Below, one piece after another: positions 1 through 24,718 of a DNA stretch of 25,321 bases. The position numbers and the translations under genes are program-made. The DNA comes from Macrostomum lignano (Eukaryota): positions 1 to 25,321 of the forward strand of contig NIVC01005128.1 in the NCBI GenBank assembly GCA_002269645.1, written 5' to 3'. The stretch's first letter is position 1. Each line of letters opens with the position of its first letter. The notes beneath the pieces are model-generated. The model saw only the letters and a list, made by a program, of their open reading frames with translations. It did not search any database and was not told where the DNA came from.

Positions 1-743
1 ACATTAAAACAAATGAATGGCTAAAACAAATTATTCGCATCATTAAAAACAAAATATTATTCAGTAAAACAAATTTACGAATTAAAACAAATCATACGGT
101 ACTTATTATTTTGGCGGGAATTTAATTTCGGGAAACACAAACTAATTTTCTAGAATAAACATAAGCCCTTCTACAATATATCTTTTTTATATAGTTAAAT
201 TGCTGTTGGCAAAGCTATATATTTTAAAATTTCATTTTTATCCTTACATTTTTCATTTTATGTTAGTGGATTCCATAGTCAGGAAGGTGGCAAGTGCACG
301 CGGGAATCAATTTATGGAAAAATCCTTGGTGCACGCCAATGTACACCAATTTTTTAAAACCCTTAACATGACGTTTCTGTTGCATGCCAAAAATCTTGAA
401 TACCAAAAATCATGTACGCCGAAAATTGTAGTATACCGTATTAGATACTATTTTTAAATAAATTTTCTACTTACGTTAAACAAAGTTTATATATAGAAAA
501 AGGAAATTCGCTTCAAAGAACATAGTGAGTATCAAAAACTTTTTCTTCACATTTCAAGAAACAAATAAACTAAAAGTCTACAAGAGTCACAAAATAAGAG
601 CGTTTAAAAGTTATTAGATATTTTAATTTTAATGTTGGCTAGTAGAGTGTAGGCCTGGACTGTACGCATTTGTTTCCCCATTGATATTCGCATTGATATT
701 CGAATTTTAACAAAAGCAAAATACTAAAAGCAACCCGTAGCAT

Positions 744-3700
744 GAAACTTTACACAGAGTAAACTGCAACCGTGAAACGACTATTGGTCAAGTTTCAGCT
801 CGATATGTAACTTTGGCTCTGAGCAGGAGCGATTTTCGATGTGTTCCATTTAAAATACATGTGATTCCAAAATTCGTATTGATATTCGAGTACAGGTACT
901 TCTGCTTCACTGATCTTGACGAAACTTTACACAGAGTAAACTGCAACCGTGAAACGACTATTGGTCAAGTTTCAGCTCGATATGTAACTTTGGCTCTGAG
1001 CAGGAGCGATTTTCGATGTGTTCCATTTAAAATACATGTGATTCCAAAATTCGTATTGATATTCGAGTACAGGTACTTCTGCTTCACTGATCTTGACGAA
1101 ACTTTACACAGAGTAAACTGCAACCGTGAAACGACTATTGGTCAAGTTTCAGCTCGATATGTAACTTTGGCTCTGAGTAGGAGCGATTTTCGATGTGTTC
1201 CATTTAAAATACATGTGATTCCAAAATTCGTATTGATATTCGAGTACAGGTACTTCTGCTTCACTGATCTTGACGAAACTTTACACAGAGTAAACTGCAA
1301 CCGTGAAACGACTATTGGTCAAGTTTCAGCTCGATATGTAACTTTGGCTCTGAGCAGGAGCGATTTTCGATGTGTTCCATTTAAAATACATGTGATTCCA
1401 AAATTCGTATTGATATTCGAGTACAGGTACTTCTGCTTCACTGATCTTGACGAAACTTTACACAGAGTAAACTGCAACCGTGAAACGACTATTGGTCAAG
1501 TTTCAGCTCGATATGTAACTTTGGCTCTGAGTAGGAGCGATTTTCGATGTGTTCCATTTAAAATACATGTGATTCCAAAATTCGTATTGATATTCGAGTA
1601 CAGGTACTTCTGCTTCACTGATCTTGACGAAACTTTACACAGAGTAAACTACAACCGTGAAACGACTATTGGTCAAGTTTCAGCTTGATATGTAACTTTG
1701 GCTCTGAGCAGGAGCGATTTTCGATGTGTTCCATTTAAAATACATGTGATTCCAAAATTCGTATTGATATTCGAGTACAGGTACTTCTGCTTCACTGATC
1801 TTGACGAAACTTTACACAGAGTAAACTGCAACCGTGAAACGACTATTGGTCAAGTTTCAGCTCGATATGTAACTTTGGCTCTGAGCAGGAGCGATTTTCG
1901 ATGTGTTCCATTTAAAATACATGTGATTCCAAAATTCGTATTGATATTCGAGTACAGGTACTTCTGCTTCACTGATCTTGACGAAACTTTACACAGAGTA
2001 AACTGCAACCGTGAAACGACTATTGGTCAAGTTTCAGCTCGATATGTAACTTTGGCTCTGAGCAGGAGCGATTTTCGATGTGTTCCATTTAAAATACATG
2101 TGATTCCAAAATTCGTATTGATATTCGAGTACAGGTACTTCTGCTTCACTGATCTTGACGAAACTTTACACAGAGTAAACTGCAACCGTGAAACGACTAT
2201 TGGTCAAGTTTCAGCTCGATATGTAACTTTGGCTCTGAGTAGGAGCGATTTTCGATGTGTTCCATTTAAAATACATGTGATTCCAAAATTCGTATTGATA
2301 TTCGAGTACAGGTACTTCTGCTTCACTGATCTTGACGAAACTTTACACAGAGTAAACTGCAACCGTGAAACGACTATTGGTCAAGTTTCAGCTCGATATG
2401 TAACTTTGGCTCTGAGCAGGAGCGATTTTCGATGTGTTCTATTTAAAATACATGTGATTCCAAAATTCGTATTGATATTCGAGTACAGGTACTTCTGCTT
2501 CACTGATCTTGACGAAACTTTACACAGAGTAAACTGCAACCGTGAAACGACTATTGGTCAAGTTTCAGCTCGATATGTAACTTTGGCTCTGAGTAGGAGC
2601 GATTTTCGATGTGTTCCATTTAAAATACATGTGATTCCAAAATTCGTATTGATATTCGAGTACAGGTACTTCTGCTTCACTGATCTTGACGAAACTTTAC
2701 ACAGAGTAAACTGCAACCGTGAAACGACTATTGGTCAAGTTTCAGCTCGATATGTAACTTTGGCTCTGAGCAGGAGCGATTTTCGATGTGTTCCATTTAA
2801 AATACATGTGATTCCAAAATTCGTATTGATATTCGAGTACAGGTACTTCTGCTTCACTGATCTTGACGAAACTTTACACAGAGTAAACTGCAACCGTGAA
2901 ACGACTATTGGTCAAGTTTCAGCTCGATATGTAACTTTGGCTCTGAGCAGGAGCGATTTTCGATGTGTTCCATTTAAAATACATGTGATTCCAAAATTCG
3001 TATTGATATTCGAGTACAGGTACTTCTGCTTCACTGATCTTGACGAAACTTTACACAGAGTAAACTGCAACCGTGAAACGACTATTGGTCAAGTTTCAGC
3101 TCGATATGTAACTTTGGCTCTGAGCAGGAGCGATTTTCGATGTGTTCCATTTAAAATACATGTGATTCCAAAATTCATATTGATATTCGAGTACAGGTAC
3201 TTCTGCTTCACTGATCTTGACGAAACTTTACACAGAGTAAACTGCAACCGTGAAACGACTATTGGTCAAGTTTCAGCTCGATATGTAACTTTGGCTCTGA
3301 GTAGGAGCGATTTTCGATGTGTTCCATTTAAAATACATGTGATTCCAAAATTCGTATTGATATTCGAGTACAGGTACTTCTGCTTCACTGATCTTGACGA
3401 AACTTTACACAGAGTAAACTGCAACCGTGAAACGACTATTGGTCAAGTTTCAGCTCGATATGTAACTTTGGCTCTGAGCAGGAGCGATTTTCGATGTGTT
3501 CCATTTAAAATACATGTGATTCCAAAATTAATATTGATATTCGAGTACAGGTACTTCTGCTTCACTGATCTTGACGAAACTTTACACAGAGTAAACTGCA
3601 ACCGTGAAACGACTATTGGTCAAGTTTCAGCTCGATATGTAACTTTGGCTCTGAGCAGGAGCGATTTTCGATGTGTTCCATTTAAAATACATGTGATTCC

Positions 3701-4765
3701 AAAATTCGTATTGATATTCGAGTACAGGTACTTCTGCTTCACTGATCTTGACGAAACTTTACACAGAGTAAACTGCAACCGCGAAACGACTATTGGTCAA
3801 GTTTCAGCTCGATATGTAACTTTGGCTCTGAGCAGGAGCGATTTTCGATGTGTTCCATTTAAAATACATGTGATTCCAAAATTAATATTGATATTCGAGT
3901 ACAGGTACTTCTGCTTCACTGATCTTGACGAAACTTTACACAGAGTAAACTGCAACCGTGAAACGACTATTGGTCAAGTTTCAGCTCGATATGTAACTTT
4001 GGCTCTGAGCAGGAGCGATTTTCGATGTGTTCCATTTAAAATACATGTGATTCCAAAATTAATATTGATATTCGAGTACAGGTACTTCTGCTTCACTGAT
4101 CTTGACGAAACTTTACACAGAGTAAACTGCAACCGTGAAACGACTATTGGTCAAGTTTCAGCTCGATATGTAACTTTGGCTCTGAGCAGGAGCGATTTTC
4201 GATGTGTTCCATTTAAAATACATGTGATTCCAAAATTCATATTGATATTCGAGTACAGGTACTTCTGCTTCACTGATCTTGACGAAAATTTACACAGAGT
4301 AAACTGCAACCGTGAAACGACTATTGGTCAAGTTTCAGCTCGATATGTAACTTTGGCTCTGAGCAGGAGCGATTTTCGATGTGTTCCATTTAAAATACAT
4401 GTGATTCCAAAATTCATATTGATATTCGAGTACAGGTACTTCTGCTTCACTGATCTTGACGAAACTTTACACAGAGTAAACTGCAACCGTGAAACGACTA
4501 TTGGTCAAGTTTCAGCTCGATATGTAACTTTGGCTCTGAGCAGGAGCGATTTTCGATGTGTTCCATTTAAAATACATGTGATTCCAAAATTCGTATTGAT
4601 ATTCGAGTACAGGTACTTCTGCTTCACTGATCTTGACGAAACTTTACACAGAGTAAACTGCAACCGTGAAACGACTATTGGTCAAGTTTCAGCTCGATAT
4701 GTAACTTTGGCTCTGAGCAGGAGCGATTTTCGATGTGTTCCATTTAAAATACATGTGATTCCAAA
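744..4765 (+). repeat. Left arm: 177-bp tandem array, about 22.7 units
   Basis: Unit phase TTGGCTCTGAG recurs at 813, 990, 1167 ... 4707 with an exact 177-bp period and only scattered substitutions. The array ends at GATTCCAAA (4765). Confidence 0.98.
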
Positions 4766-7274
4766 CAACAACAACAACAACAGAGTACGCTGCCAGTTCG
4801 CAAAAGCAGCGTCAGATGGCGCGCTTCGAAGCTTGGGCGCGAACAAAGGCCGCACCGCCGGCAGAGTCCGGGGTGCCGGCGTAAGCCAGCAGACAGTCGA
4901 CGTAGCGCCGAGTCCTCGCCTGTCCCCGCCGGTAGGGTGCCTGCAACGTAAGTAGCAGCACCTCCTGCACCGGCTCCGGACAGTAGGCCTCGGTGCGGAT
5001 GACGTGGCCTGCTAGCTGGAGTCGCCGACGGCGCAGCAGATCGCTAGGACGGGCCAGGCCGGCGCGATGATAGAGCGCCGTGTTGGTGACTCGCTCGTTG
5101 CCGATCTTGAAGGCGGCGCGCAGCAGGCCAGCGTGCGCCGCGTCGACTTGAGCCTCGAGCGAGTCTATCAGCGTCCAGGTCTCGGCGTTGTATAACAGGA
5201 CGGTCTCGATCACCGCCTGGAACAGCGCCGCCCTCTGGCGGTCCGGTAGGGCCTCGGACTGCAGGACTGACCTTATAGAACGAAAGGCAGCCCAGGCAAG
5301 TCCTCGGCGACGCCGCAGATCCTCGCGGACGTCGGGAACCAGACCGCCGAGGTAGACGAACTGCTGACATCTTGGAAGCTCACTCGCCTGTCCATCAGCG
5401 CCTCGGCAGAAGATTGCAGCCTCGGTGTCGTCCGGCACGCATAGCACGACGGTCTTCTGCGTGTTGACCACCAGGCCGACGCTCGCCGCAACGGCAACCA
5501 GTCTATCCAGCTGTCGTTGGGCGCCCTCGAGGGCGAGGTCATCGGCGTAGCCAAGCACGCTGAGCCGTCTCTCCGGTTGGCGTCGACCCACGCGTCGCCG
5601 CAGCAGGAAGCCGTCGTCGTTGGAAGGCAGAGCAGTCCGTAGCACCCAGTCAAGCACCAGAATAAATAGGAACGGCGCTAGCGTATCTCCCTGGAGCACC
5701 CCGGAGGATGTCTCGAAGAAATCCGATAGGCCGTCCGGTGTTTAGACAGCAGCCGTCGTGCCGTGATATAGCGCCATGACAGCAGAAATCAGCAGGTCTG
5801 GCACGTTGTACGCACGGAGCACCTCTGGGAGCGCGTCCCTCACGACCGAGTCGAAGGCCTTCCTGAAATCGACGAAGATCAGGATCAGGGTCAACTGGCG
5901 GATGCGCGCCTCCTCGATGACTCGCCGAAGAGCCAGGATCTGCGTCACTGTGCCGCGATGGGCCGGAATCCGTTCTGCTCAGGCCACAGGTACGGGTCCA
6001 GCACAGTCTGTAACCGCGATAGCAGCATGCGGTTGAACAGCTTCGCGGCGCAGGACTGTAGGCAGATGCCTCGATGCTCCTCGAGCTTGGTGGTGCCCGG
6101 CTTCTTTGGAATGGCGACGATGTGCGCCGTGGTCCATTCGTTTGGCGCCACCTCACCGGAAAGCACGCGGTTCATCACTCTGGCGACCTGAGTGGCCACG
6201 CAGTGGATCCGCAGCGCCTCGGTGGGCACCTCGTCTGGACCAAGCGCTTTGCCGCCCGGCGACTGCCGAGCGAACTTCACAACGTCGGCTGTGCTGACTG
6301 GGGCAACGTTGAAGCTCTCCTCCGCCGGCAACGGCGTCTCCGGCGGCAGCCTCAGATTTTCTGGAAGCGGAGGGGGCGGCGCGTTGACAATGGCGGCGAA
6401 GAACTCGCGCAGCTCGTTCCTGCGCTCATCCGGAATGTCGCCTGCTTGGTTGAGCGCGATGCGCCGCTTTCGCCCCGTCAGAGTGTTGATGACGGACCAG
6501 GCCACGCGCCCTCTGGCATCGGGCCCTGCGGCAGAGACGGCTTGGATGGCGTCATCGACAGCGGACTGCTGCCGCTGCAGGTAGACAGCCGCCAGAGCCT
6601 CCTCCGCCTCACGAGTTTGCCGCCCACTCAGACGGAGCCTCTCCAGATCTTCCCTCGCTTCGTCGATCGCGGGGTCGTCCTGCCAGACCGGCTGCCCGCG
6701 CTGGGCCGGTCGCATCAGCGGGACTGCTTGCTCCGCAGCGGCTCGAACTGCAGCGCTCACCTCCGCGTACTCGGCTCCTCCACGCTTGTCGCCCAGCGCA
6801 GTGACAAAGACACCGGCAAAGCGACGCCGCGTCTCGGCGTCCCTGAGCGCGCGGTAGCAGCGCCGCGGTGGCCGCTTTGGCGGACGGTAGAGCGGGTCCC
6901 GAAGCCGAAGGTCGCAGATGAGCAGCCGATGGTCGGACAGCAGAGCCAGCGGCGTAATGGTGCGGCAGTTGGTGACGCGGCGGCACTCACGAAAGCGCAT
7001 AAGCACGTGGTCGAGCTGTGCCAGCCTCCGCGTAGCGTTCCGGCCGCGCGCGTTCCGCCGCCTCTGCTTGCAGCCGACGAAGGTCGCGAGCCTGCCCGGT
7101 GACTTGCGGAATCTGGTGTTGGCCGACACCATGTCCTGTCTCTCCAGGAAGTCCTCTAGCGCTCCGGTGTTGCCGTTCTCGCGAGCTGTCACAAACAGCG
7201 ATCGCTCGGACCTACGCAGAACTGCGTTCAGGTCTCCGAGAATGACCACTGTGTCACGTTGCGCCATCTCCTCC
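4764..7274 (-). mobile_element. 5'-truncated RTE-clade-like non-LTR retrotransposon (LINE), inactivated
   Basis: Minus-strand AP-endonuclease motifs (ILGDLNA, LDHVL, SDHR) are followed by RT motifs (EQNGFRP, FVDFRKAFDSV, QGDTLAPFLF, YADD, FVYLGG) and an RTE-type C-terminus (LLYNAETWTL, RRRRLQLAGHVIR). The 3' UTR after the stop at 4812-4814 is about 30 nt, then a (GTT)6 tail (AAC x6 at 4764-4781 on +). Clade assignment rests on motif recognition, not a phylogeny. Confidence 0.9.
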
Positions 7275-7276
7275 AC
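4812..7276 (-). pseudogene. Disrupted endonuclease-reverse transcriptase ORF
   Basis: Three ORF-track pieces join up: 7276-5945, 5948-5742 and 5699-4812. A 1-nt frameshift near 5958 restores GFRP-H-RGTVTQILALRR, and there is an in-frame TAA at 5742-5744. The N-terminal part of the endonuclease is missing. Confidence 0.88.
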
Positions 7277-8667
7277 CTGTACTCGAATATCAATATGAAT
7301 TTTGGAATCACATGTATTTTAAATGGAACACATCGAAAATCGCTCCTGCTCAGAGCCAAAGTTACATATCGAGCTGAAACTTGACCAATAGTCGTTTCAC
7401 GGTTGCAGTTTACTCTGTGTAAAGTTTCGTCAAGATCAGTGAAGCAGAAGTACCTGTACTCGAATATCAATATGAATTTTGGAATCACATGTAATTTAAA
7501 TAGAACACATCGAAAATCGCTCCTGCTCAGAGCCAAAGTTACATATCGAGCTGAAACTTGACCAATAGTCGTTTCACGGTTGCAGTTTACTCTGTGTAAA
7601 TTTTCGTCAAGATCAGTGAAGCAGAAGTACCTGTACTCGAATATCAATATGAATTTTGGAATCACATGTATTTTAAATGGAACACATCGAAAATCGCTCC
7701 TGCTCAGAGCCAAAGTTACATATCGAGCTGAAACTTGACCAATAGTCGTTTCACGGTTGCAGTTTACTCTGTGTAAAGTTTCGTCAAGATCAGTGAAGCA
7801 GAAGTACCTGTACTCGAATATCAATATGAATTTCGGAATCACATGTATTTTAAATGGAACACATCGAAAATCGCTCCTGCTCAGAGCCAAAGTTACATAT
7901 CGAGCTGAAACTTGACCAATAGTCGTTTCACGGTTGCAGTTTACTCTGTGTAAAGTTTCGTCAAGATCAGTGAAGCAGAAGTACCTGTACTCGAATATCA
8001 ATACGAATTTTGGAATCACATGTATTTTAAATGGAACACATCGAAAATCGCTCCTGCTCAGAGCCAAAGTTACATATCGAGCTGAAACTTGACCAATAGT
8101 CGTTTCACAATTGCAGTTTACTCTGTGTAAAGTTTCGTCAAGATCAGTGAAGCAGAAGTACCTGTACTCGAATATCAATATTAATTTTGGAATCACATGT
8201 ATTTTAAATGGAACACATCGAAAATCGCTCCTGCTCAGAGCCAAAGTTACATATCGAGCTGAAACTTGACCAATAGTCGTTTCACGGTTGCAGTTTACTC
8301 TGTGTAAAGTTTCGTCAAGATCAGTGAAGCAGAAGTACCTGTACTCGAATATCAATACGAATTTTGGAATCACATGTATTTTAAATGGAACACATCGAAA
8401 ATCGCTCCTGCTCAGAGCCAAAGTTACATATCGAGCTGAAACTTGACCAATAGTCGTTTCACGGTTGCAGTTTACTCTGTGTAAAGTTTCGTCAAGATCA
8501 GTGAAGCAGAAGTACCTGTACTCGAATATCAATACGAATTTTGGAATCACATGTATTTTAAATGGAACACATCGAAAATCGCTCCTGCTCAGAGCCAAAG
8601 TTACATATCGAGCTGAAACTTGACCAATAGTCGTTTCGCGGTTGCAGTTTACTCTGTGTAAAGTTTC
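7275..8667 (-). repeat. Right arm: inverted 177-bp tandem array, about 7.9 units
   Basis: Reverse complement of the left-arm unit with the same 177-bp period. The inner end ACCTGTACTCG at 7275 abuts the LINE 5' end. Confidence 0.98.
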
Positions 8668-10161
8668 ATGCTACGGGTTGCTTTTAGTATTTTGCTTTTG
8701 TTAAAATTCGAATATCAATGCGAATATCAATGGGGAAACAAATGCGTTGGACTGTAGGCTAGGCTGTAGCCTCAACTAGTTGGTTTAATGAATATTCAAA
8801 TTCAATTGTTCACGTTTAACTTTATATATTGTATATATATAGTGTATACATCTATATTTGACTTGTTGATATACTGTCAGTTTGTATTTGCACGCCAAGG
8901 TTACACGCCAAGTAAAAAACTTATACGCTGAAAATTTAGGCGTGGCTTGAGACCCCTATTTGCACGCCAACTTTGCACACCAAAATTTTAGCGTGGCTTG
9001 TGCACGCGGGAAAATTCCCGCGTGCAGGCCACCTTCCTGAGTATGAAGTGGATTCCATATTTGATTTTGTATTTTACCATTCTGCTGCTAATTCTACGTT
9101 TTACTATGCTATTCCATTCTGATTCCCCTGTGGATTCCACATTTTACCGGGTACCATATATTAGGCCTAGCAAATACAGATAATTTGTTCAAAACTTTAG
9201 AGCAATGCTAGACCTGTGCCATGGAGGATTTAGTAAAAAAAATTCACATTTTAAGCAATTTTTGCACTTTGGATAGAAAGACTTGGATTTAGAAAATTTT
9301 AAAATAGCCTATGTTAGATGTCACTTTCTATATATGTTCATTTTTATGCTTAGTATATCATGGCCATAAGATAAAGATAGTCTCGACTCTCTTACTAGGC
9401 CAGCCCTAGGCTTACTATAAATGTAAATTTTGAATTTTATAATTTAAGCATATTTGAATGGCAATAAGGCAGGACTACTAGCTATATAGTAACAAGCTTA
9501 TTTGACTAAAGGCAAGCTAGTGCTAGCTAAATAGTAGAAAAATTTTATGGGCAATAGGCCCAGCTGGCTAGCTAGAGTTTTGGCACCACAACACAACTCA
9601 TTTTCTAAGTTCTAATGGCTATGGATCTGGCAGTGCTATATAGAACTTAAAAAATATTTTAAAAGATTAAAAAGACTAGGCCTAATAAGAATATGGCTTA
9701 TATCTATTTAAAATTCAACATTAAAAGTATCTCCTTTCAAATCTTGAGACTCATCATCTAGTCTTAAATCTTATCTAGAACAAAGTCTCAATTTCTGCCA
9801 CTTATAGAAAAACTATACTCCAGAAGGCATAGATCATGCTGAAAAATTCTGGCATGCATTTAGTTTAGCCTAAAATTGTAGCATGCATTGGCATATATTT
9901 GGGTATTGTATGCCAAAAGTGGCATGTTGGCATGCTATGGCATAGAAATAGCAGGCATAATAATAGTGAGGCATATTTTTTAAGACAAAAGTTCATGAAA
10001 AGACTTTGTATTGTGAAATGAAGACAAGAATTCATACTTATTTTTATTGCAAAATAACAAGTAAATTTTATTGTGCCAAAAAAAGTTATTTACTTAGTAT
10101 ATTTATTATTTGCATGCTACAATAGTTTTAAAAAATGTTGAAGACTCAATAACATGATCTA

Positions 10162-10333
10162 CATACATGTGCAAATTTGGGAATCACCCGGCCATTTCTA
10201 TTGGCAACATACACATGTAAGTCGCTATTGGCTGAGAGCAGTCACGTGACTACTATTCCGTCCAATAGCAACTTACATGTGTGTGTTGCCAATAGAAATG
10301 GCCGGGTGAATCCCAACGTTGCGCCCAAGCATG
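10162..10333. mobile_element. Palindromic MITE, copy 1 (CATAC...CATG ends, 8-bp TSD)
   Basis: Long inverted arms (GGCCATTTCTATTGGCAAC... / ...GTTGCCAATAGAAATGGCC). TSD ATGATCTA at 10154-10161 and 10334-10341. Two more copies in the window. Confidence 0.9.
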
Positions 10334-11301
10334 ATGATCTAGACTATAGTAGAAAAACAATATTGAAGAATGTTCCTAATATTATAATAGCCTTGCCAGA
10401 TCTATAGCTATTAGAAAATGAGTTCTAGTGCCAGAACTCTAGCCAGTGCCATTATTTTTACTAGTATAGCTATATGGGCTAAATAAACACTGTTATTTAT
10501 ACTAAACTATATAATTTTTTAATATATAGCCTCCAAGCTAAAATATAAATTTTCACATTTGAAGCTAGCTAGGACCAATCTCAAATGGGATTAGCCTAAG
10601 TCTAAGAAGCATAGCATAATAATCTATAAAGTACTACTACTGACAGTAGGCACAAGCGCTATAAATAGGCCATGAAAGATGAGGCCCCTACTGCAAGTCC
10701 CTAAAGTAGAGTAGAAATGTTTGTATTTTGATTGATTTTAATGCAATGAAATAGTTTCTCCTATATTAGATATATATTACCTTGTATGCTTATGACTATG
10801 TTCTAATAAATATAAAATGCTAGTACTAGTCATAATGATTATATTGGCTATTGAATGCTTAAAAATCTAGCTCTTTTACTTTGAGTAGACTAGTGTAGTG
10901 AAAGTCCTTTTACTTGTCAATATTAATTATTATATATAGCTAGAAGTAAATTTTATTAAAAGTAGTTTTGCAAATAAATAGGAGCCTAACTTTGCAATGC
11001 AATTACATATATTAGAAGCCTGCTTAGACCTGAAAGCCATATTTAATTTGGTAATTGTGATTTTGGTTTTAACATTTTACTGTAAGCATAGCCTTGCAAC
11101 TTAGTATATAAAACGAGTCCATTACTAAAATTTGTTTGAATGAAGGGCTATTGCTATGCTTCCAGATTTATACTTCTACACACATTTAAAGTACACTATT
11201 ATGTGCCAGTGCATAACAACTTTTTAATGCATTTCAATGTCTTGTTTATATTCATGTAACAACCAACTGTCCAGCCAACCAGACAGAGCCCAGTCATCTC
11301 C

Positions 11302-11643
11302 ATGGCAACCAGAGCTGGTGGTGATGCCACCTACTCGGTGAATGACAAGGCTAAGCCAGGCTTCATTCGGGTCTCCTTTGACCTGCCAGGTCTGAAGAAG
11401 GGCCTGCTAGATGGCAGCAAAAATGCCAAGAAGACTAGCAATTCAACCCTGAATGTGTCAATCGCGCCTGGCTCAGCTCACTTTGGCAGCGTGTCAATCA
11501 AAGGCCAGACGAAAGGTCACGTGATTGAGTACCAGCTACGCGCTGATCCCTCCGAGCTGCTCGGCGCGTGGCTTGGCTCCCCGCCCAGCTACTATGAGGT
11601 TGAGCAGGGAGTCCTGAGGGTCTTTCTCAAGCTAGCTGATTGA
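11302..11643 (+). CDS. 113-aa protein with possible HSP20-like chaperone (alpha-crystallin/CS) fold
   Basis: ATG-to-TGA ORF in a GC-rich island within AT-rich flanks. IRVSFDLPGLKK near the N-terminus and EQGVLRVFLK at the C-terminus resemble the DLPG and GVL-x-V motifs of alpha-crystallin domains. AATAAA at about 11880. It may be only the last exon of a longer gene. Confidence 0.55.
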   Translation: MATRAGGDATYSVNDKAKPGFIRVSFDLPGLKKGLLDGSKNAKKTSNSTLNVSIAPGSAHFGSVSIKGQTKGHVIEYQLRADPSELLGAWLGSPPSYYEVEQGVLRVFLKLAD

Positions 11644-12250
11644 TTGGATTTTTAATGATAGGATGTGCAATTGTGTCTTTGAAATTAGCAGTTAGAAATT
11701 GCAAGCTAGCTAGACATTTATTGACCATATTCGTCGCTAGTAGATTTATGTTATTATTTCTGCTATTAAGCGTCCATGAATATTATTGTATTTGTCATGC
11801 TTATCGGTTTATTAAAATATAAAGTTATTTTACTATGATCTATATTTATAAAATTTTGTTTGTCTGCTGTTTTGCCGCTAATAAAAATCAGTTGTTGCTG
11901 TATAATCGGCAAGTGATTTGCTTTTGTTTATTTATCCCAAACAAGCAAGGCTCGCTTCCACCGCCATGCCATCAGATGCAGTCAGGTCAGATTTTGTGTG
12001 ATTTCGCAGAATTTCTAAATTGAAGTTCAAGATTTATTTCTACATTTAGTCGTGTGATTTGATGGCAGTGTGAATCAACTTTTAATGTGTCGCTTTCACT
12101 AGCTGGCAATTTGACAGCAGGATAAATTTGTTCAAGTTGTGAGCTAGGGGAAGCGCCTGTAGCAGCGGTCGGCAAACCTTTTTTACCTCAAGGGTTAGAT
12201 TAAGACAGGTGAGAGAGGAAAGGAGAGGGGAGCGGCTGGAGAGGAGCTCG

Positions 12251-12623
12251 AGGGAGACGCTAGAGAAGAGGGAGACGCTAGAGAAGAGGAGGAGGCTAGA
12301 GAAGAGGGAGACGCTAGAGAAGAGGGAGACGCTAGAGAAGAGGAGGAGGCTAGAGAAGAGGGAGACGCTAGAGAAGAGTGGAAGGCTAGAGAAGAGGGAG
12401 ACGCTAGAGAAGAGGGAGACGCTAGAGAAGAGTGGAAGGCTAGAGAAGAGTGGAAGGCTAGATAAGAGGGAGACGCTAGAGAAGAGGGAGACGCTAGAGA
12501 AGAGTGGAAGGCTAGAGAAGAGGGAGACGCTAGAGAAGAGTGGAAGGCTAGAGAAGAGGGAGACGCTAGAGAAGAGGGAGACTCTAGAGAAGAGGGGAGG
12601 CTAGGGAAGAGTGGAGATGCTAG
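12251..12623 (+). repeat. 18-bp purine-rich minisatellite (GAGAAGAGGGAGACGCTA and variants), about 20 units, within a GA-rich tract 12207-12884
   Basis: Three alternating variants are visible: GAGAAGAGGGAGACGCTA, GAGAAGAGTGGAAGGCTA and GAGAAGAGGAGGAGGCTA. Confidence 0.92.
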
Positions 12624-13790
12624 ATAAAAAACGAAGGCTAGTGAGGCTAGTGAGGCGGGAGAAAAAAAGAGGAGACTATAGAACGGAAAAGGGGGCGAGG
12701 TGAGAGAGAAAAGCGGTGGGGAGAGGCGATAGAGAAGAGAGGTGAGGGTACAGAAATGAGAGAAGACAATACAACATGTAAGAGGATAAGTAAGATGGGA
12801 AATGAAATTAAAGCAGAGAATTGTGAAGAGAGAGAAAAGAAAGAAGCTGATGAGATGGATCAGAGAAGAGCTAAGAAGAGACACGTCAAACCTTGAGCGA
12901 GCGAATTGCTATTGTGGAGTTTCAATAAAGTACCCGAGGGCCGGATAGAGAGGCTTCGTGGGCCGCATGTGGTCTATAGCAACTCCTAATCAAGGACTTC
13001 TAGACTAGCAGGACGTAAAACTCAAAGATCGTGTAAATTTTTAGGAGGACGATTTCCTGGAAAAAATACACTGCGGAGATAGGAGCAAATCATTTTTTCA
13101 TCACAAAATCAATGATTGCATTTGATCTAAGGCAGCTAAGATAACCATTCTTTTTATTTAGCACGCACAACATGTTACTCTATTATATTTTAATGTAGTT
13201 GTGTCTTGAAAGTTTCATCTTCATATTATTTTCTTTTTATTTCATAAGCCCCAAGTTGCAAAATACTCACAAGTGGCATTAGCCGAACTTTGTATTTTTC
13301 CTTTTTAAAATCAAGTATATTTGCAATAAAAATGCTGCATTACGGTACTATTAAGCCATTATTGTAGGTATAATTCCATTTCAATGTAGTAACTATACTA
13401 ATAGACCTGTCTATGTAGTTAAATATATAAGGACAATATTTACAATATGCCCCCACCATTTTCATTTTTCTTGTTTTACCTAGGCCTCAAGTCTTTAGAA
13501 AGCTATCAGTTTTTACCTGAAAGCCAGACAGAAAAAAATGGTTAGGGCCTAGGCCTAGTCACAAAAATGGGCACTAACCTTTTTTCTAGGTTTTTACACT
13601 TTTAATTAGGCTTAGATTTTTAATTTTTTATTGCAAATTTGAATACACTATACTATATAAACTAGGCCTAGCACCCAGCTGGTTTAGGTTTACCTTCCTT
13701 GAATTATATATTTTGTTGAATATAATACCTTTAAAATTGCAATTTTAGTTTGTAATGGTATATTTCATATCATATTTGAATCATAGGCCT

Positions 13791-13969
13791 CATACATGCG
13801 CAACCTTGGGAATCACTCGGCCATTTCTATTGGCAACACAGAACACACACATGTAAGTTGCTATTGGATGGAATAGTAGTCACGTGATTGCTCTCAGCCA
13901 ATAGCAACTTATATATGTGTGTTGCCAATAGAAATGGCCGGGTGAATCCCTAGGTTGCACCCAAGCATG
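13791..13969. mobile_element. Palindromic MITE, copy 2 (nested in the 4.86-kb element)
   Basis: Same family as 10162-10333. TSD ATAGGCCT at 13783-13790 and 13970-13977. Confidence 0.9.
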
Positions 13970-15129
13970 ATAGGCCTAATTATTAGATTATTATGATAGG
14001 TCTTTTATTATAAACTAAAAAATGGGTAATACAATACTGCATGCCCACATTTATCTTAACTTTAGCATTTATTTACTATTGAAACTAGGCCTAGGCCTTA
14101 TTGCACTCATAAAGCTTTGAAACTAGGAATATTTAGGCCTATTCATTTTACTACCTTATATCTATTTATAAAACTAAGCTGGCTCTAATAATTGACAATG
14201 AAAATCTAGTTTTTAGTATTAATTTAAAATTTGTTTATTAATTTAGTTATCTATATTCAGTTTTAATTTTATTTTTATAGGTAAATATGATTTTTTAATT
14301 AGTATTATTTAATAACTTAGATTTTGGCTATTAGGGTCTAATCCAAATACTAAATAGTACTTAGATGTCTAATTGTTACATTTTTATTCAATAATCTTTA
14401 ATTTTACTATAAGTATTTTGTACCAATATATTATCCTATCATCTATCTTAATAGATAGATAGTTATCATGCCAATTAAATTTTTGGTAGTAACTTACACT
14501 AGCAACCATTTTAGACAAAAGGCTGCAAAATCTAATCTTGTTAGATTTCAAACAGATTTCCTTATGATATAAATTATGTCTAGCATTGTATTTGACATAC
14601 TTAATCCTTTGATCTTTCATGTGCCTATCTGACTTCAGTGGAAATTTTTGCAAAGCATCAACCTGCTAAAATGCCATTGCACAAGATGATATACTTTTGG
14701 ATACCAATTAAAGTGATCCACAAAGTGTCTTTCCTGACACCACAAGGTCTTCATTACATTTGACTTTAGCAAGTGAGTAAATTTTCTAAATGTTGTTTTT
14801 TTTAATATATGGATAAGGGTTAGTAAAAAGCAAGGGTCAATGTGGTTGGGGCAAAAGATGATATATCCTTACCTTTTACATGGCTAGTTTCCCTAAATTT
14901 ATGATGGCATAGTTTGTAGCAAAATTTATGGTATAACCTTTTAGGAAAGTTCATTCCAATAAAAAGACAAAATTTCTCATTTTACCATTGCCCATACCTA
15001 CCAACATTTTAGTGTGGTGGATGGACTCCAGCACTAGGCCTATTGCTCATCATTGCAGCACTCAAGTCAAAGTTTTGCATTTTTGGGCTTCCAATATCAA
15101 CTAGAGCGATAGTCTCAATTGGAGGCCAT

Positions 15130-15360
15130 GGAAAGCAATCTCAAGCATGCTGGTAGAGCCTGGTGCCAACCTTGGAAAGAATTTGGAGCCCACCTGATTG
15201 TTAATCATTTTTCATCTGGCAGCTGCAACTGAGCATTGGAAATGGAATTCACTATATCTATAACTGGCCAGCGGGAACTGCACACTGAGAAGCAATGCCC
15301 ATGTCCTTCACCCCACATAACATTGAGGTCTCACTTTAGTGGTCTTAGCGATGTAGGATG
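15130..15360 (-). pseudogene. Possible decayed P-element/THAP9-type transposase C-terminal remnant
   Basis: Minus-strand fragments in different frames, KIASYIAKTTKVRPQC and about 40 codons later QSGGLQILSKVGTRLYQHA*DCF, loosely resemble the YIAG...C-x-x-C and RGGL-x-x-PS motifs of P transposases. Many stops and weak similarity. Confidence 0.3.
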
Positions 15361-15733
15361 CGATCTTCATAGACATGCCATTGAACCTGATCTGCTATGC
15401 CACATCTCAAGAAAGCTGACTAATGTTTTAAGGGTATAGTGCGGCAAGACTGAGTCTGATAGATAGTCCAATTTCAGCCACTGTAGGCCGACTGTGCAAA
15501 ATTAATTGAAGCAAATAAGCTTCATGGTACTTGCTAATTTGCCAATTTTTTCTCTTTTTAAATACTGATATCTGCTTTTCTGTTTAGTTTAGCTACAAGT
15601 TGCGCAGCCATTGGAGCTAAGGCCGCCCACGCATTGCCTGGATGTAGTGCTCCTCACTAACCCCGTGCATAAAACTCCACATGGCCATGACAATCCAACT
15701 GCACTGTTAGTTCCACAAAAAAATTCTATGCCG

Positions 15734-15903
15734 CATACATGCGCAACCTGGGGAATCACTCGGCCGTTTCTATTGGCAACACACATGTAAGTCGCTATTG
15801 GCTGAGAATAGTCACGTGACTACTATTCCATCCAATAGCAACTTACATGTGTGTGTTGCCAATAGAAACGGCCGGGTGAATCCCTAGGTTGCGCCCAGGC
15901 ATG
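15734..15903. mobile_element. Palindromic MITE, copy 3 (nested in the 4.86-kb element)
   Basis: Same family. TSD CTATGCCG (15726-15733) versus CTATGCCT (15904-15911), a 7/8 match. Confidence 0.88.
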
Positions 15904-18900
15904 CTATGCCTGGTAAACACTTAACACTACACTGCTGGTTATTATACTCATATTTCGACCTCCAAATTAAGCCAAGCCTTTACAGTATTTAAATTTACTT
16001 TTCTGATTTACTTTTGATTTACTTCATAGATACAAGTACCATGTCATACAAAATATTTACTCAATTTTGCCCTTGCAGTTGCATATTATGAGCTGTGCAT
16101 CTTTGTGCCTGGTTTATTTTTCCATTTCTGAAACATCAAACATTGCAAAAAACCAATTCAAAAACAAAGAACATTTTCTATTTTCTACATCAGTATGTAT
16201 AAAGAATGTATCTATACATTGCTCTTTTAATGTTTCAATGCACTGTATATATATTATAAATTACATCTTACATTCTTTGCAAGTCAAAACAGTTGAAAGT
16301 TCACATTTCAGATCTGTGAAACAAAATAAAATTCATTTGAAATGAAAAAAAGTCTTGTCTTTTTTATTTACTAAGGTGAAAGAGAAGTTATTAACTTTGA
16401 GTTATTTATAAGAAAGACATCACCAGCAAAAATTAAGGTAGTGCCAATGAGTCTTGAAGTGCTAGTGTCAGCCAGCAAGCAGTTAAAGAACTGCAGTTGC
16501 TCATCTTGAATGCAGTGCACAGTAGAATAGCCTCAAAGCTTGATGTTGTCTGGTTACTAGAGCACAGCAATCTTCTGTATGTTGACAACCAAACCAATTG
16601 CCAGCACAAAACCAACCAGCCTGCCTAGCTTTTTGGGTGGCAGGCTAGGTCACTGAGTTGTGACAAGTGAGCAGGACATGGAATGCCATAATGCAATCAT
16701 TAGGTTGATCAAACATGAAGCATTGGCCAATACACAGCTAGTAGATAAGCTCAGAATGTAGGCTGAAAATCAGGCAGTGGCAATTGAGGCTTGTTGCTGG
16801 CAGCTGAAACAAAATATGTTGAAATATAAAGAATTTAATTGTTCAGGGTTAATGCAAAAATAAATATTATCAAAGGTTGTCAATTGTATTTTAATATATA
16901 AGTCAACATAAAAAAAAAGCTAATACATAAGCAAAAGGTACAAAAATTCAATTAGAAGTTTTACTACTATATGATGTAAATTTTTAGCTAAAAAAGTAAT
17001 TTAAACTTAAAATAGTACACATATAAAACTATTTTAACAAATTCCTTTTTCTTAAACTATTATTTAACATTTACCTTTTCTAACGACTACTAATCTATTT
17101 ATTTTGTTAATTATTAATGCAAATATATTTCTTATTAACACATTTTAACCTATAAAACTTGCAATTTAATAATAATAATAATAATAATATTAAAAGTTAA
17201 ATACTAAAAAAATCTAGAATATTTCTTATAGATAGGCCTACTTAGTAAAAATGGTTAGAGCTTGTTTTTGTGCCTAGGTCTATATGACTATATTCTTGTC
17301 CTATATATGCAGGTCTAGCTTAAAAAACTGATAGCTTTCTAAAGACTTGAGGCCTAGGTAAAACAAGAAAAATGAAAATGGTGGGGGCATATTGTAAATA
17401 TTGTCCTTATATATTTAACTACATAGACAGGTCTATTAGTATAGTTACTACATTGAAATGGAATTATACCTACAATAATGGCTTAATAGTACCGTAATGC
17501 AGCATTTTTATTGCAAATATACTTGATTTTAAAAAGGAAAAATACAAAGTTCGGCTAATGCCACTTGTGAGTATTTTGCAACTTGGGGCTTATGAAATAA
17601 AAAGAAAATAATATGAAGATGAAACTTTCAAGACACAACTACATTAAAATATAATAGAGTAACATGTTGTGCGTGCTAAATAAAAAGAATGGTTATCTTA
17701 GCTGCCTTAGATCAAATGCAATCATTGATTTTGTGATGAAAAAATGATTTGCTCCTATCTCCGCAGTGTATTTTTTCCAGGAAATCGTCCTCCTAAAAAT
17801 TTACACGATCTTTGAGTTTTACGTCCTGCTAGTCTAGAAGTCCTTGCTCCTAATTACTCTTGCGGCACTCTGAGGCACCGCGCCCTGTGGCATTGTCTCA
17901 ACGCCTTACTGGCTGAAAATGTGAAAGGCTTTTAATTGTTGTTTAAGTCAGCCCGATCACTCTGAAGCTCTGGCTTGAAATTGAGGCATTGTCATGGCTT
18001 CAACGCTTGAAATTGTTGTTTCTTCTCCAAGGTGTACAGGATGACATGCAGCGTCACAGGGCCAAATATTGCGGCAGCAACGCCAATTACAAGAAACTAC
18101 TGCATGGAAATTTAATGTTTCAGCCATGCTTTCAAGCAGCTGCGAGCGCGCTACTGTACATGCAGCTGTGACTGCAGTTCAGACTTATGGCAGCGACTCT
18201 CTGGAAGGAGCTGGTGCCAATCCGACGGGTGGGTCAGGGCGTCGACATGCATGGGTTTATTAGTGATGGGGGGGACGTGCCACAAATTGCATAAGGTTAG
18301 CCAAAAATGATCTACATGTACATGTACACATGTAAATTACTATAAATTCTTGCATATAATTTACATGTACACTTTTTCAGAATCGCAGTGTTGTCACTTG
18401 AATAGCAATTGTTTAGTGTCGCAGACAGATCTAGGCGCTATTTTGTCGCCCTGAAGCAATCATCACCGCGGTCACACAAATATGTGGGGTACGTGGGCCG
18501 TAGTCAACTTTCAACTTTTCTTGTTTATTTTTTCAGCATCAAACCGTCCAGGCCAACCCCTTAATAAATTTCTGGGTGCGCCACTGGGTGTAAAGTGGAA
18601 ACTAAGGAACGGCGGAGCGAAGGACGTGCAGTGGAATTTTTGATTGTATAATACTTGGAGCTAAATAAACCTCCCAAGTTCGGCAAAAATTATGATTTTT
18701 TACTTAATATTTTAATACTTCTGCAAAATTGTCAATAAATTTTAATTTCAATAACTACTTTACGATTCATTAGTAGAAATGTTTGTATAAGATTTTGTTT
18801 TAACTGGTATATTTGCATTTAAATTTGCTTCTCAACAACAGATTTTTTGTCATGAAGTCTAGCTAGCGTTATGCGCTGAGGGGCAGAGACGATAAATTCT

Positions 18901-23553: not shown

Positions 23554-23739
23554 GTAAGCAAATTGTTGAAGACTTGGATTAATGTATTCGCCAACAGGCT
23601 GGGTCGATGTATTGTCAGTTGGGTCACATAGATCAATCTAGGCCAATAAAGGCTATTAGGTCAAATAAGATCATTGGTTAAATTTTAGTCTTAGGGTCAA
23701 TTTTATGTCTTTGTGGCATTTATTTCGGTCCTCTGGTCA

Positions 23740-24718
23740 ATATAGGCCATCGTGTCAATGCGGGTCATCAGGTCAATCTAGGTCATCATGTCAATCTAGG
23801 TCATCAGGTCAATCTAGGTCATCAGGTCAATCTAGGTCATCAGGTCAATCTAGGTCATCAGGTCAATGTAGGTCATCAGGTCAATCTTAGGTCATCAGGT
23901 CAATCTAGGTCATCAGGTCAATGTAGGTCAATCAGGTCAGTGTAAGTCAATCTAGGTCAATCATGTCAATCTAGGTCATCATGTCAATCTTTGTCATCAG
24001 GTCATCTAGTCAATCTGGGTCATCGGGTCAATCTAGGTCAATCTGGGTCATCAGGTCAATTTAGGTCAATCTGGGTCATCAGGTCAATCTAATGGTCAAT
24101 CTGGGTCATCGGTGTCAATCTAGGTCAATCTGGGTCAGTCATCGGGTCAATCTAGGTCAATCTGGGTCATCAGGTCAATCTAGGTCAATCTGGGTCATCA
24201 GGTCAATCTAGTCAATCTGGGTCATCGGTCAATCTAGGTCAATCTGGTCATCGCGTCAATCTAGGTCAATCTGGGTCATCAGGTCAATCTAGGTCAATCT
24301 GGGTCATCGGGTCAATCTAGGTCAATTCATCAGGCAATCTAGGTCAATCTGGGTCATCAGGTAAATCTAGGTCAATCTGGTCATCAGGTCAATCTGGGTC
24401 ATCAGGTCAATCTGGGTCATCAGGTCAATCTAGTCATTCAGTTTAACCTAGGTCATCAGTCAATCTAGGTCATTCAAGTTAATCTAGTCATCAGGTTAAT
24501 CTAGGTCATCAAGTCAATCTAGGTCACATCAATCTAGGTCATTCAGGTTAATCTAAGTCATCAAGTCAATCTAGGTCATTCAGGTCAATCTAGGTCATTC
24601 AGGTTAATCTATGTCATTCAGTTCATCAAGGTCAATCCTGGTCATTCAATCAATGTAGGTCATTCGGTCAATCTAGGTCATTCAGGTCAATCTAGGTCAT
24701 TCAGGTCAAAGGTCAATC
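23740..24718 (+). repeat. Intronic complex satellite of 8-10-bp RGGTCA-based modules (GGTCAATCTA, GGTCATCA, GGTCAATCTG, GGTCATTCA)
   Basis: Dozens of same-strand modules are visible, with a degenerate lead-in from about 23625. Confidence 0.93.

Follow-up and report, generated by a model that had tools for sequence, protein, structure and literature searches.

Contig NIVC01005128.1 of the flatworm Macrostomum lignano (assembly GCA_002269645.1; L006, 100% identical) was analyzed in its entirety, and this stretch of 25,321 nt is referred to here as the window. It holds three nested mobile elements: an element with terminal inverted repeats (TIRs), a foldback transposon inside it and, where the two arms of the foldback meet, a dead long interspersed nuclear element (LINE) of RTE-like architecture. 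That a LINE occupies the meeting point of the arms, with neither a spacer nor a target-site duplication (TSD) of its own, had been proposed in an initial annotation of the sequence and is borne out by the repeat arrays, the DNA alignments and both junctions (Table 1).

Arms and termini of the foldback transposon

The arms are built from a 177-bp unit. Tandem Repeats Finder delimits a forward array of 22.7 copies that are 99% alike (744–4765) and, at 7275–8667, 7.9 copies of the same unit in reverse complement. By inverted-repeat search the arms are 99% complementary, and the complementarity reaches 80 nt past both arrays (664–743 versus 8668–8747) into unique termini that each start with ACGCATTTGTTTCCCC and are identical at 80 of 80 positions as an inverted repeat. 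A direct 8-bp repeat, TGGACTGT, bounds 664–8747; by chance, a match like this would occur with a probability of ~1.5e-5. Enclosed by inverted termini and a direct 8-bp repeat, the two arrays thus form the arms of a DNA transposon of foldback type at 664–8747, with a TSD. The initial annotation had reasoned that ordinary insertion into one array cannot yield opposite orientations, and we accept the argument. The arms do belong to a mobile foldback, with 80-nt termini and an 8-bp TSD. Its term "symmetry centre" holds for the point at which orientation switches and fails for the midpoint, as the arms, termini included, are very unequal in length (4,102 nt on the left versus 1,473 nt on the right).

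Each terminus has two copies, and each unit one, of an 11-nt motif, ATTGATATTCG (34 copies against 0.02 expected). Such a distribution is what repeated transposase-binding sites would show, and we predict this role for the motif. Units and termini also have ATTGATATTCGA in common, which lies at positions 135–146 of every 177-bp unit. The TSD measures 8 bp with symmetric termini; a reading of 9 bp needs termini that are unequal by one base. It thus falls short of the 9-bp (9–10-bp) duplication by which Drosophila FB and Mutator-related elements are strictly recognized, and a duplication of 8 bp fits several superfamilies.

The foldback transposon is non-autonomous and has no coding capacity. 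No transposase was found in the element, and no open reading frame (ORF) of its own has homologues. The unit does contain an open frame of 59 codons, which as a protein has no homologue among 5.8 billion proteins; one stop-free frame in six is an event of about 10% chance, and the frame was dropped as a coding feature. Mechanically called ORFs of 1085 and 456 aa arise from this open frame in the arrays at 744–4765 (+) and 7275–8667 (-). A 24-mer of the unit has no match in metagenome, prokaryote-genome or viral collections, and in the same collections a 23-mer of the terminus has a single match, to a GC-rich bacterial contig without repeats, which we regard as chance. The M. lignano genome papers make no mention of a 177-bp repeat or a foldback element, and this flatworm foldback family is probably undescribed.

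The locus is represented by five contigs including the window, which are alleles or assembly duplicates and comprise at least two haplotypes; the other four were reached through a small gene at 11260–11643. Mlig_3_7, assembled from the DV1 line (PacBio/Canu), is redundant and rich in tandem repeats (PMC5730564).

The central LINE and its junctions

Between the two arms stands only a minus-strand, 5'-truncated LINE (4766–7274), with no other sequence. In DNA alignments to related LINEs (L001, 82%; L002, 86%) it is continuous from 4766 to ~7274, and by tblastn residues 110–934 of a 936-aa relative (P0001) map to 7279–4821 in frames -1 and -3. The 5' end is short by ~690 nt, or 109 codons, and the break falls inside the apurinic/apyrimidinic (AP) endonuclease domain. 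The initial annotation put the end of the LINE at 7300, which is 25 nt into the right arm. At its 3' end the LINE is complete, and the (TTG)n tail there is a family trait: the relative L002 ends in ...GTAGCTTGTTGTTGTTGTTGT, with a (TTG)5 tail, and then passes into unrelated flank. A reverse transcriptase (RT) is detected by Pfam, the C-terminus of the endonuclease (GDLNA) is also kept on the minus strand, and the G+C content of 4766–7274 is 63% versus 30–39% in the surroundings.

Full-length relatives, the closest named ones from M. lignano, have a single ORF of 930–1050 aa with PF03372 and PF00078. With ~690 nt lost and 2.5 kb kept, the intact LINE would have measured ~3.2 kb, in keeping with the compact 3.2–3.3 kb of RTE-clade LINEs. 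Because of this size, the single ORF (N-terminal AP endonuclease, then RT) and the simple-repeat tail that is not poly(A), the copy fits an RTE-like label, which is one of architecture only. An exact look-up of the two large LINE ORFs returned nothing on record; the GenBank annotation of the assembly leaves out repeats.

An in-frame TAA inside the RT is common to all five contigs, which upholds the stop codon first annotated. The sole frameshift is different in kind. A G is missing at 5960, giving GGG versus the GGGG of the other four contigs, which read through; it is probably a long-read consensus error or a private mutation. Shared frameshifts had been suggested as a marker for mobilization of the fragment, and this one, private to NIVC01005128.1, is unusable for that purpose. 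The copy has a stop codon and has lost its 5' end together with the N-terminal portion of the endonuclease; it is a dead copy, and nothing in it is predicted to be active.

The left arm runs straight into the LINE tail, as initially reported: it ends ...GATTCCAAA at 4765 and CAACAACAACAACAACA begins at 4766. The forward-unit strand ...TTCCAAA thus continues as the complement of the tail, with 1–3 bases ambiguous, and this is the arrangement expected if that 3'-OH primed reverse transcription of the LINE RNA. At the right junction the 5' end of the LINE joins the inverted arm without filler, and no direct repeat surrounds the LINE. In unit coordinates, the left arm ends at 128 (125–128 if overlap with the tail is allowed) and the right arm at 154 (146–154 if microhomology is allowed). 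The phase offset of 26 nt reported earlier therefore stands as the maximal-match value, within a range of 18–29 nt once overlaps are allowed.

On the sense strand the 5' junction reads GAGTACAGGTGGAGGAGATG, within which GTACAGGT equals unit positions 147–154, and a related LINE has GTGCAGGTGGAGGAG at the same place. Because the closest M. lignano protein (P0051) reads VRVEEM there, 3–5 nt of microhomology are certain and 8 nt are possible. The unit carries a self-complementary GTAC at 147–150 and again at 153–156, and the inner end of the right arm coincides with the second of these, the axis of a hypothetical spacer-less palindrome. A full tail, 5' truncation, microhomology and the lack of a TSD are together the usual marks of a target-primed insertion in which target sequence was lost and not duplicated.

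Table 1. Coordinates of the foldback transposon and its central LINE in the window.
Feature	Position	Strand	Remarks
Left TSD copy, TGGACTGT	656–663	.	Read directly
Left unique terminus, 80 nt, starts ACGCATTTGTTTCCCC	664–743	+	Perfect inverted repeat of 8668–8747; ATTGATATTCG at 680–690 and 692–702
Left arm, 22.7 units	744–4765	+	Ends at unit position 128
LINE 3' tail (TTG)n, CAACAA... on the + strand, CAACAACAACAACAACA	4766–4782	-	Adjoins left arm
LINE body: AP-endonuclease C-terminal part, RT, 3' untranslated region; GC ~63%	4783–7274	-	
In-frame TAA in RT	5742–5744	-	No difference among the five contigs
GGG run, GGGG elsewhere	5960–5962	-	Private to NIVC01005128.1; compared with L004 2831, L005 4696, L007 3780 and L008 4700
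Junction microhomology ACCTGTAC (sense GTACAGGT)	7275–7282	.	Unit 147–154 or LINE codons V Q V; relative GTGCAGGT
Right arm, 7.9 inverted units	7275–8667	-	Inner end at unit position 154
Right unique terminus	8668–8747	-	Perfect inverted copy of 664–743
Right TSD copy, TGGACTGT	8748–8755	.	Directly after right terminus

Both LINE junctions are identical in all five contigs. L004 and L005 differ from the window by 4–5 bases in 10 kb; L007 and L008, which carry several substitutions in both the LINE and the right arm, make up the second haplotype. Their left arm counts 13.7 units, against 22.7 in the window, and has another variant pattern and an identical inner end. Because the junctions are the same in five contigs while the left arm went to 13.7 versus 22.7 units, they are older than the split of the haplotypes and have been stable while the arrays changed. 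The structure is not an artefact of one contig. Comparison of the window at 744–4765 with L008 at 1077–3505 points to fast array turnover or to poor assembly of the array; the right arm is almost unchanged.

A homeologous locus, L009, is ~97% identical to the window and lacks all of 278–9046. Since the three nested insertions are missing there, all of them are younger than the ~3% divergence of the homeologs. L009 is also without the host TIR element, hence it offers no clean empty site for the foldback. An insertion at 7251–7923 of L009 was considered as an empty-site control; it shares only its termini with the host element, and no control was gained.

Origin of the LINE between the arms

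From the junction sequences, we favor a reading in which one LINE inserted at or close to the axis of a foldback palindrome that already existed, with loss of target, and assign it a probability of roughly 0.55. The host TIR element (~677 bp, 278–9046 minus its contents) would have received the foldback transposon (664–8747). The LINE endonuclease or a pre-existing nick may then have opened the forward-unit strand of the left arm between ...TTCCAAA and ATTCG, so that the (UUG)n tail of the LINE RNA would be reverse-transcribed from the 3'-OH of the left arm until synthesis halted ~690 nt before the 5' end. The end of the complementary DNA (cDNA) would have annealed by 3–8 nt (GTACAGGT) to the 3' end of the inverted arm, priming the second strand. 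Because the two nicks would have flanked the palindrome axis on opposite sides, the target would be lost instead of duplicated. This loss would come to at least 26 nt (left-arm unit positions 129–154) if the arms met spacer-less at GTAC 153–156, and to more if a loop or extra units lay between them; larger losses are equally allowed. A two-step variant, in which an ordinary insertion beside the axis is followed by microhomology-mediated loss of the short inner palindrome, would give the same product. The LINE would now be a passive 2.5-kb spacer that forms the middle domain of the element. Long inverted repeats suffer from palindrome instability, and a 2.5-kb spacer is expected to stabilize them.

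The initial annotation had already suggested that LINE cDNA entered a break at a palindrome tip, and the junctions fit such a site. They do not fit the passive patching that was envisaged with it: the tail and the microhomology indicate active target-primed reverse transcription (TPRT) from a nick in the left arm. Nothing shows the accompanying deletion of an original loop or transposase gene; a spacer-less axis at GTAC 153–156 would need only a 26-nt loss. For L1, insertions that delete target sequence and show microhomology are established (10.1101/2024.12.14.628481). The present case shares with the human L1 deletion insertions a 3' tail that is intact where reverse transcription was primed, a truncated 5' end joined through short microhomology, and the absence of a TSD. 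It differs from them in having as its target a long palindrome's axis with mutually inverted flanks, and in its kind of LINE, which is RTE-like and ends in a (TTG)n tail.

Several points weigh against insertion at an existing axis. The palindrome is assumed to have been there beforehand, and no foldback without the LINE was seen among the five contigs of this one locus; all five versions carry the LINE, and therefore the order in which foldback and LINE arrived at the site cannot be read from them. A random insertion within 26 nt of the axis has a chance of only ~1%, because of which either a preference for the center (breakage or nicking at a hairpin tip) or the better survival of spacer-bearing copies must be added. 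A register test of the arms gave 13–19 mismatches in every register, which leaves the size of the deletion unfixed, and the patterns differ between haplotypes.

The next best account, which we consider unlikely though well worth keeping in view, is that the LINE fragment was cargo, i.e., that a propagating composite element already had it as its fixed middle domain before arriving here. Either origin of the junctions is compatible with this account. Termini identical at 80 of 80 positions and a perfect TSD speak for recent movement as a unit, the LINE is present in all haplotypes of the locus, and non-coding middle domains do occur in foldback families. Amplification of a founder that arose in one odd event would, in addition, explain the central place without any targeting of the center at this locus. 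All of this is drawn, however, from five copies that amount to one locus, and in the foldback families described so far, copies differ in their middle domain. FB-NOF of Drosophila melanogaster carries a defined foreign segment between its foldback arms that moves with the element, and NOF is known only together with FB. Unlike NOF, the central segment here is a fragment of an independent LINE family, for which co-mobilization is only a possibility.

Doubtful, and to our minds less probable than cargo, is an origin of the foldback from the LINE itself. Under this scenario TPRT took place in an array of one orientation, the unjoined end was replicated and fused, and the inverted arm was copied from the left arm; the LINE event would thereby have placed an inverted duplicate of one transposon end on the other side of the cDNA, creating a new mobilizable foldback with the LINE as founding middle domain that was later mobilized to this site. 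The central position is then automatic and the polarity is as predicted, with the tail on one arm and, at the 5' end, a non-homologous or microhomology-mediated join to the inverted copy. Cancer genomes and experimental clones have yielded foldback junctions that contain L1 insertions of the TPRT type (PMC7058536), and these junctions share with the present structure the order of genomic DNA, tailed LINE cDNA and the same DNA inverted. Those junctions are somatic and chromosome-scale and involve copy-number change, in contrast to the 1.4-kb inverted segment found here, which ends in a transposon terminus, is in the germline and is enclosed by a direct TSD. The outer flanks are unrelated and not inverted copies of each other, and with the TSD being direct, a mobilization step has to be added. 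Neither an inverted duplication that runs into the outer flank nor a lost or translocated reciprocal end, as breakage-replication/fusion calls for, was found.

A rare variant (5C>A + 133A) occurs once per arm near the center of NIVC01005128.1, as an inverted copy of the left arm would have it, but this shared inner variant is missing from the left arm of the second haplotype, and we do not use the 5C>A "mirror" marker as evidence. The arms now count 22.7 versus 7.9 units, every register of the 99%-identical array fits alike (the same 13–19 mismatches), and foldback elements arise without LINEs in other taxa.

We give next to no credence to an assembly artefact, in which the long-read assembler would have created the orientation switch or the junctions of the LINE by chimeric joining: the PacBio/Canu assembly is of a very repeat-rich, partly redundant genome, and its array copy numbers and single-base indels (such as that at 5960) are clearly unreliable, but five separately assembled contigs share both junctions despite differences in single nucleotides, arm length and presence of a 4.9-kb element, and the inverted outer termini with their direct 8-bp duplication force an orientation switch somewhere inside. 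A palindrome from a missed adapter or a chimeric read is ruled out by these five concordant contigs and by the LINE, which is single-copy and non-palindromic, unlike a missed-adapter read. Recombinational inversion between the arms after an ordinary insertion was rejected on logic, as the LINE would keep units of the same orientation on both sides.

Neighboring elements and relation to known foldbacks

The host TIR element consists of 278–663 and 8756–9046 (~677 bp), begins with GTCAGGAAGGTGG and ends with CCACCTTCCTGA. It is flanked by AGTGGATTCCATA at 265–277 and 9047–9059, and is absent from L009. A second large element, at 12991–17846, is 4.9 kb long and non-coding, with TIRs of 524 nt that are 100% identical and an 8-bp duplication, CTCCTAAT. 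Because NIVC01001907.1 (L004) has a clean empty site, at which AGCAACTCCTAAT is directly followed by TACTC, this element is an insertion polymorphism, and its family has probably been active recently. Self-complementary elements of ~160–190 bp, 83–91% alike, lie at 10162–10335, 13784–13977 and 15727–15911, as well as at 8900–9073 of L009; they resemble foldback miniature inverted-repeat transposable elements, and two of them are inside 12991–17846.

The remainder of the window holds two arrays and one gene. At 12250–12624 is a purine-rich array with a period of 18 bp (GAGGGAGACGCTAGAGAA) and a strong GC skew; a degenerate array with periods of 10, 18 and 28 bp occupies 23727–24709, with ~80% identity in the homeolog. 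The small annotated gene at 11260–11643 (+) encodes a hypothetical protein of 127 aa, has PAA79294.1 as a relative and no Pfam domain, and is found in six contigs of the assembly, of which five are near-identical and one is the homeolog.

Tetris and like foldback elements combine a flanking domain with tandem-repeat arms, which have a motif in common with that domain, TSDs of 8–9 bp and a variable middle domain (PMC4079207). The M. lignano transposon follows Tetris (of Drosophila virilis), FB and Galileo in this layout, having 80-nt termini, 177-bp units that share ATTGATATTCGA and an 8-bp TSD. The likeness drawn here is one of structure; unlike these elements, the M. lignano transposon resides in a flatworm and its middle domain is exactly one LINE fragment.

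In summary, both parts of the structure are of known kinds, the junctions can be accounted for by insertion mechanisms already known, and what is apparently undescribed is a flatworm foldback family with a nested LINE as its middle domain, seen at a single locus. As one locus, it chiefly documents this foldback family and very recent transposon activity in M. lignano. Should the central position stem from a true preference, it would be evidence from the germline that the axes of palindromes (hairpin or cruciform tips, or the breaks that these undergo) attract LINE integration, and such insertions would stabilize long inverted repeats by supplying a spacer. If the same fragment sits at many loci, the element would be a DNA transposon with retrotransposon sequence as its fixed core, or a foldback born from a LINE event. 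In the latter case, the L1 foldback junctions of tumors would have a counterpart in the germline, with retrotransposons begetting foldback DNA transposons.

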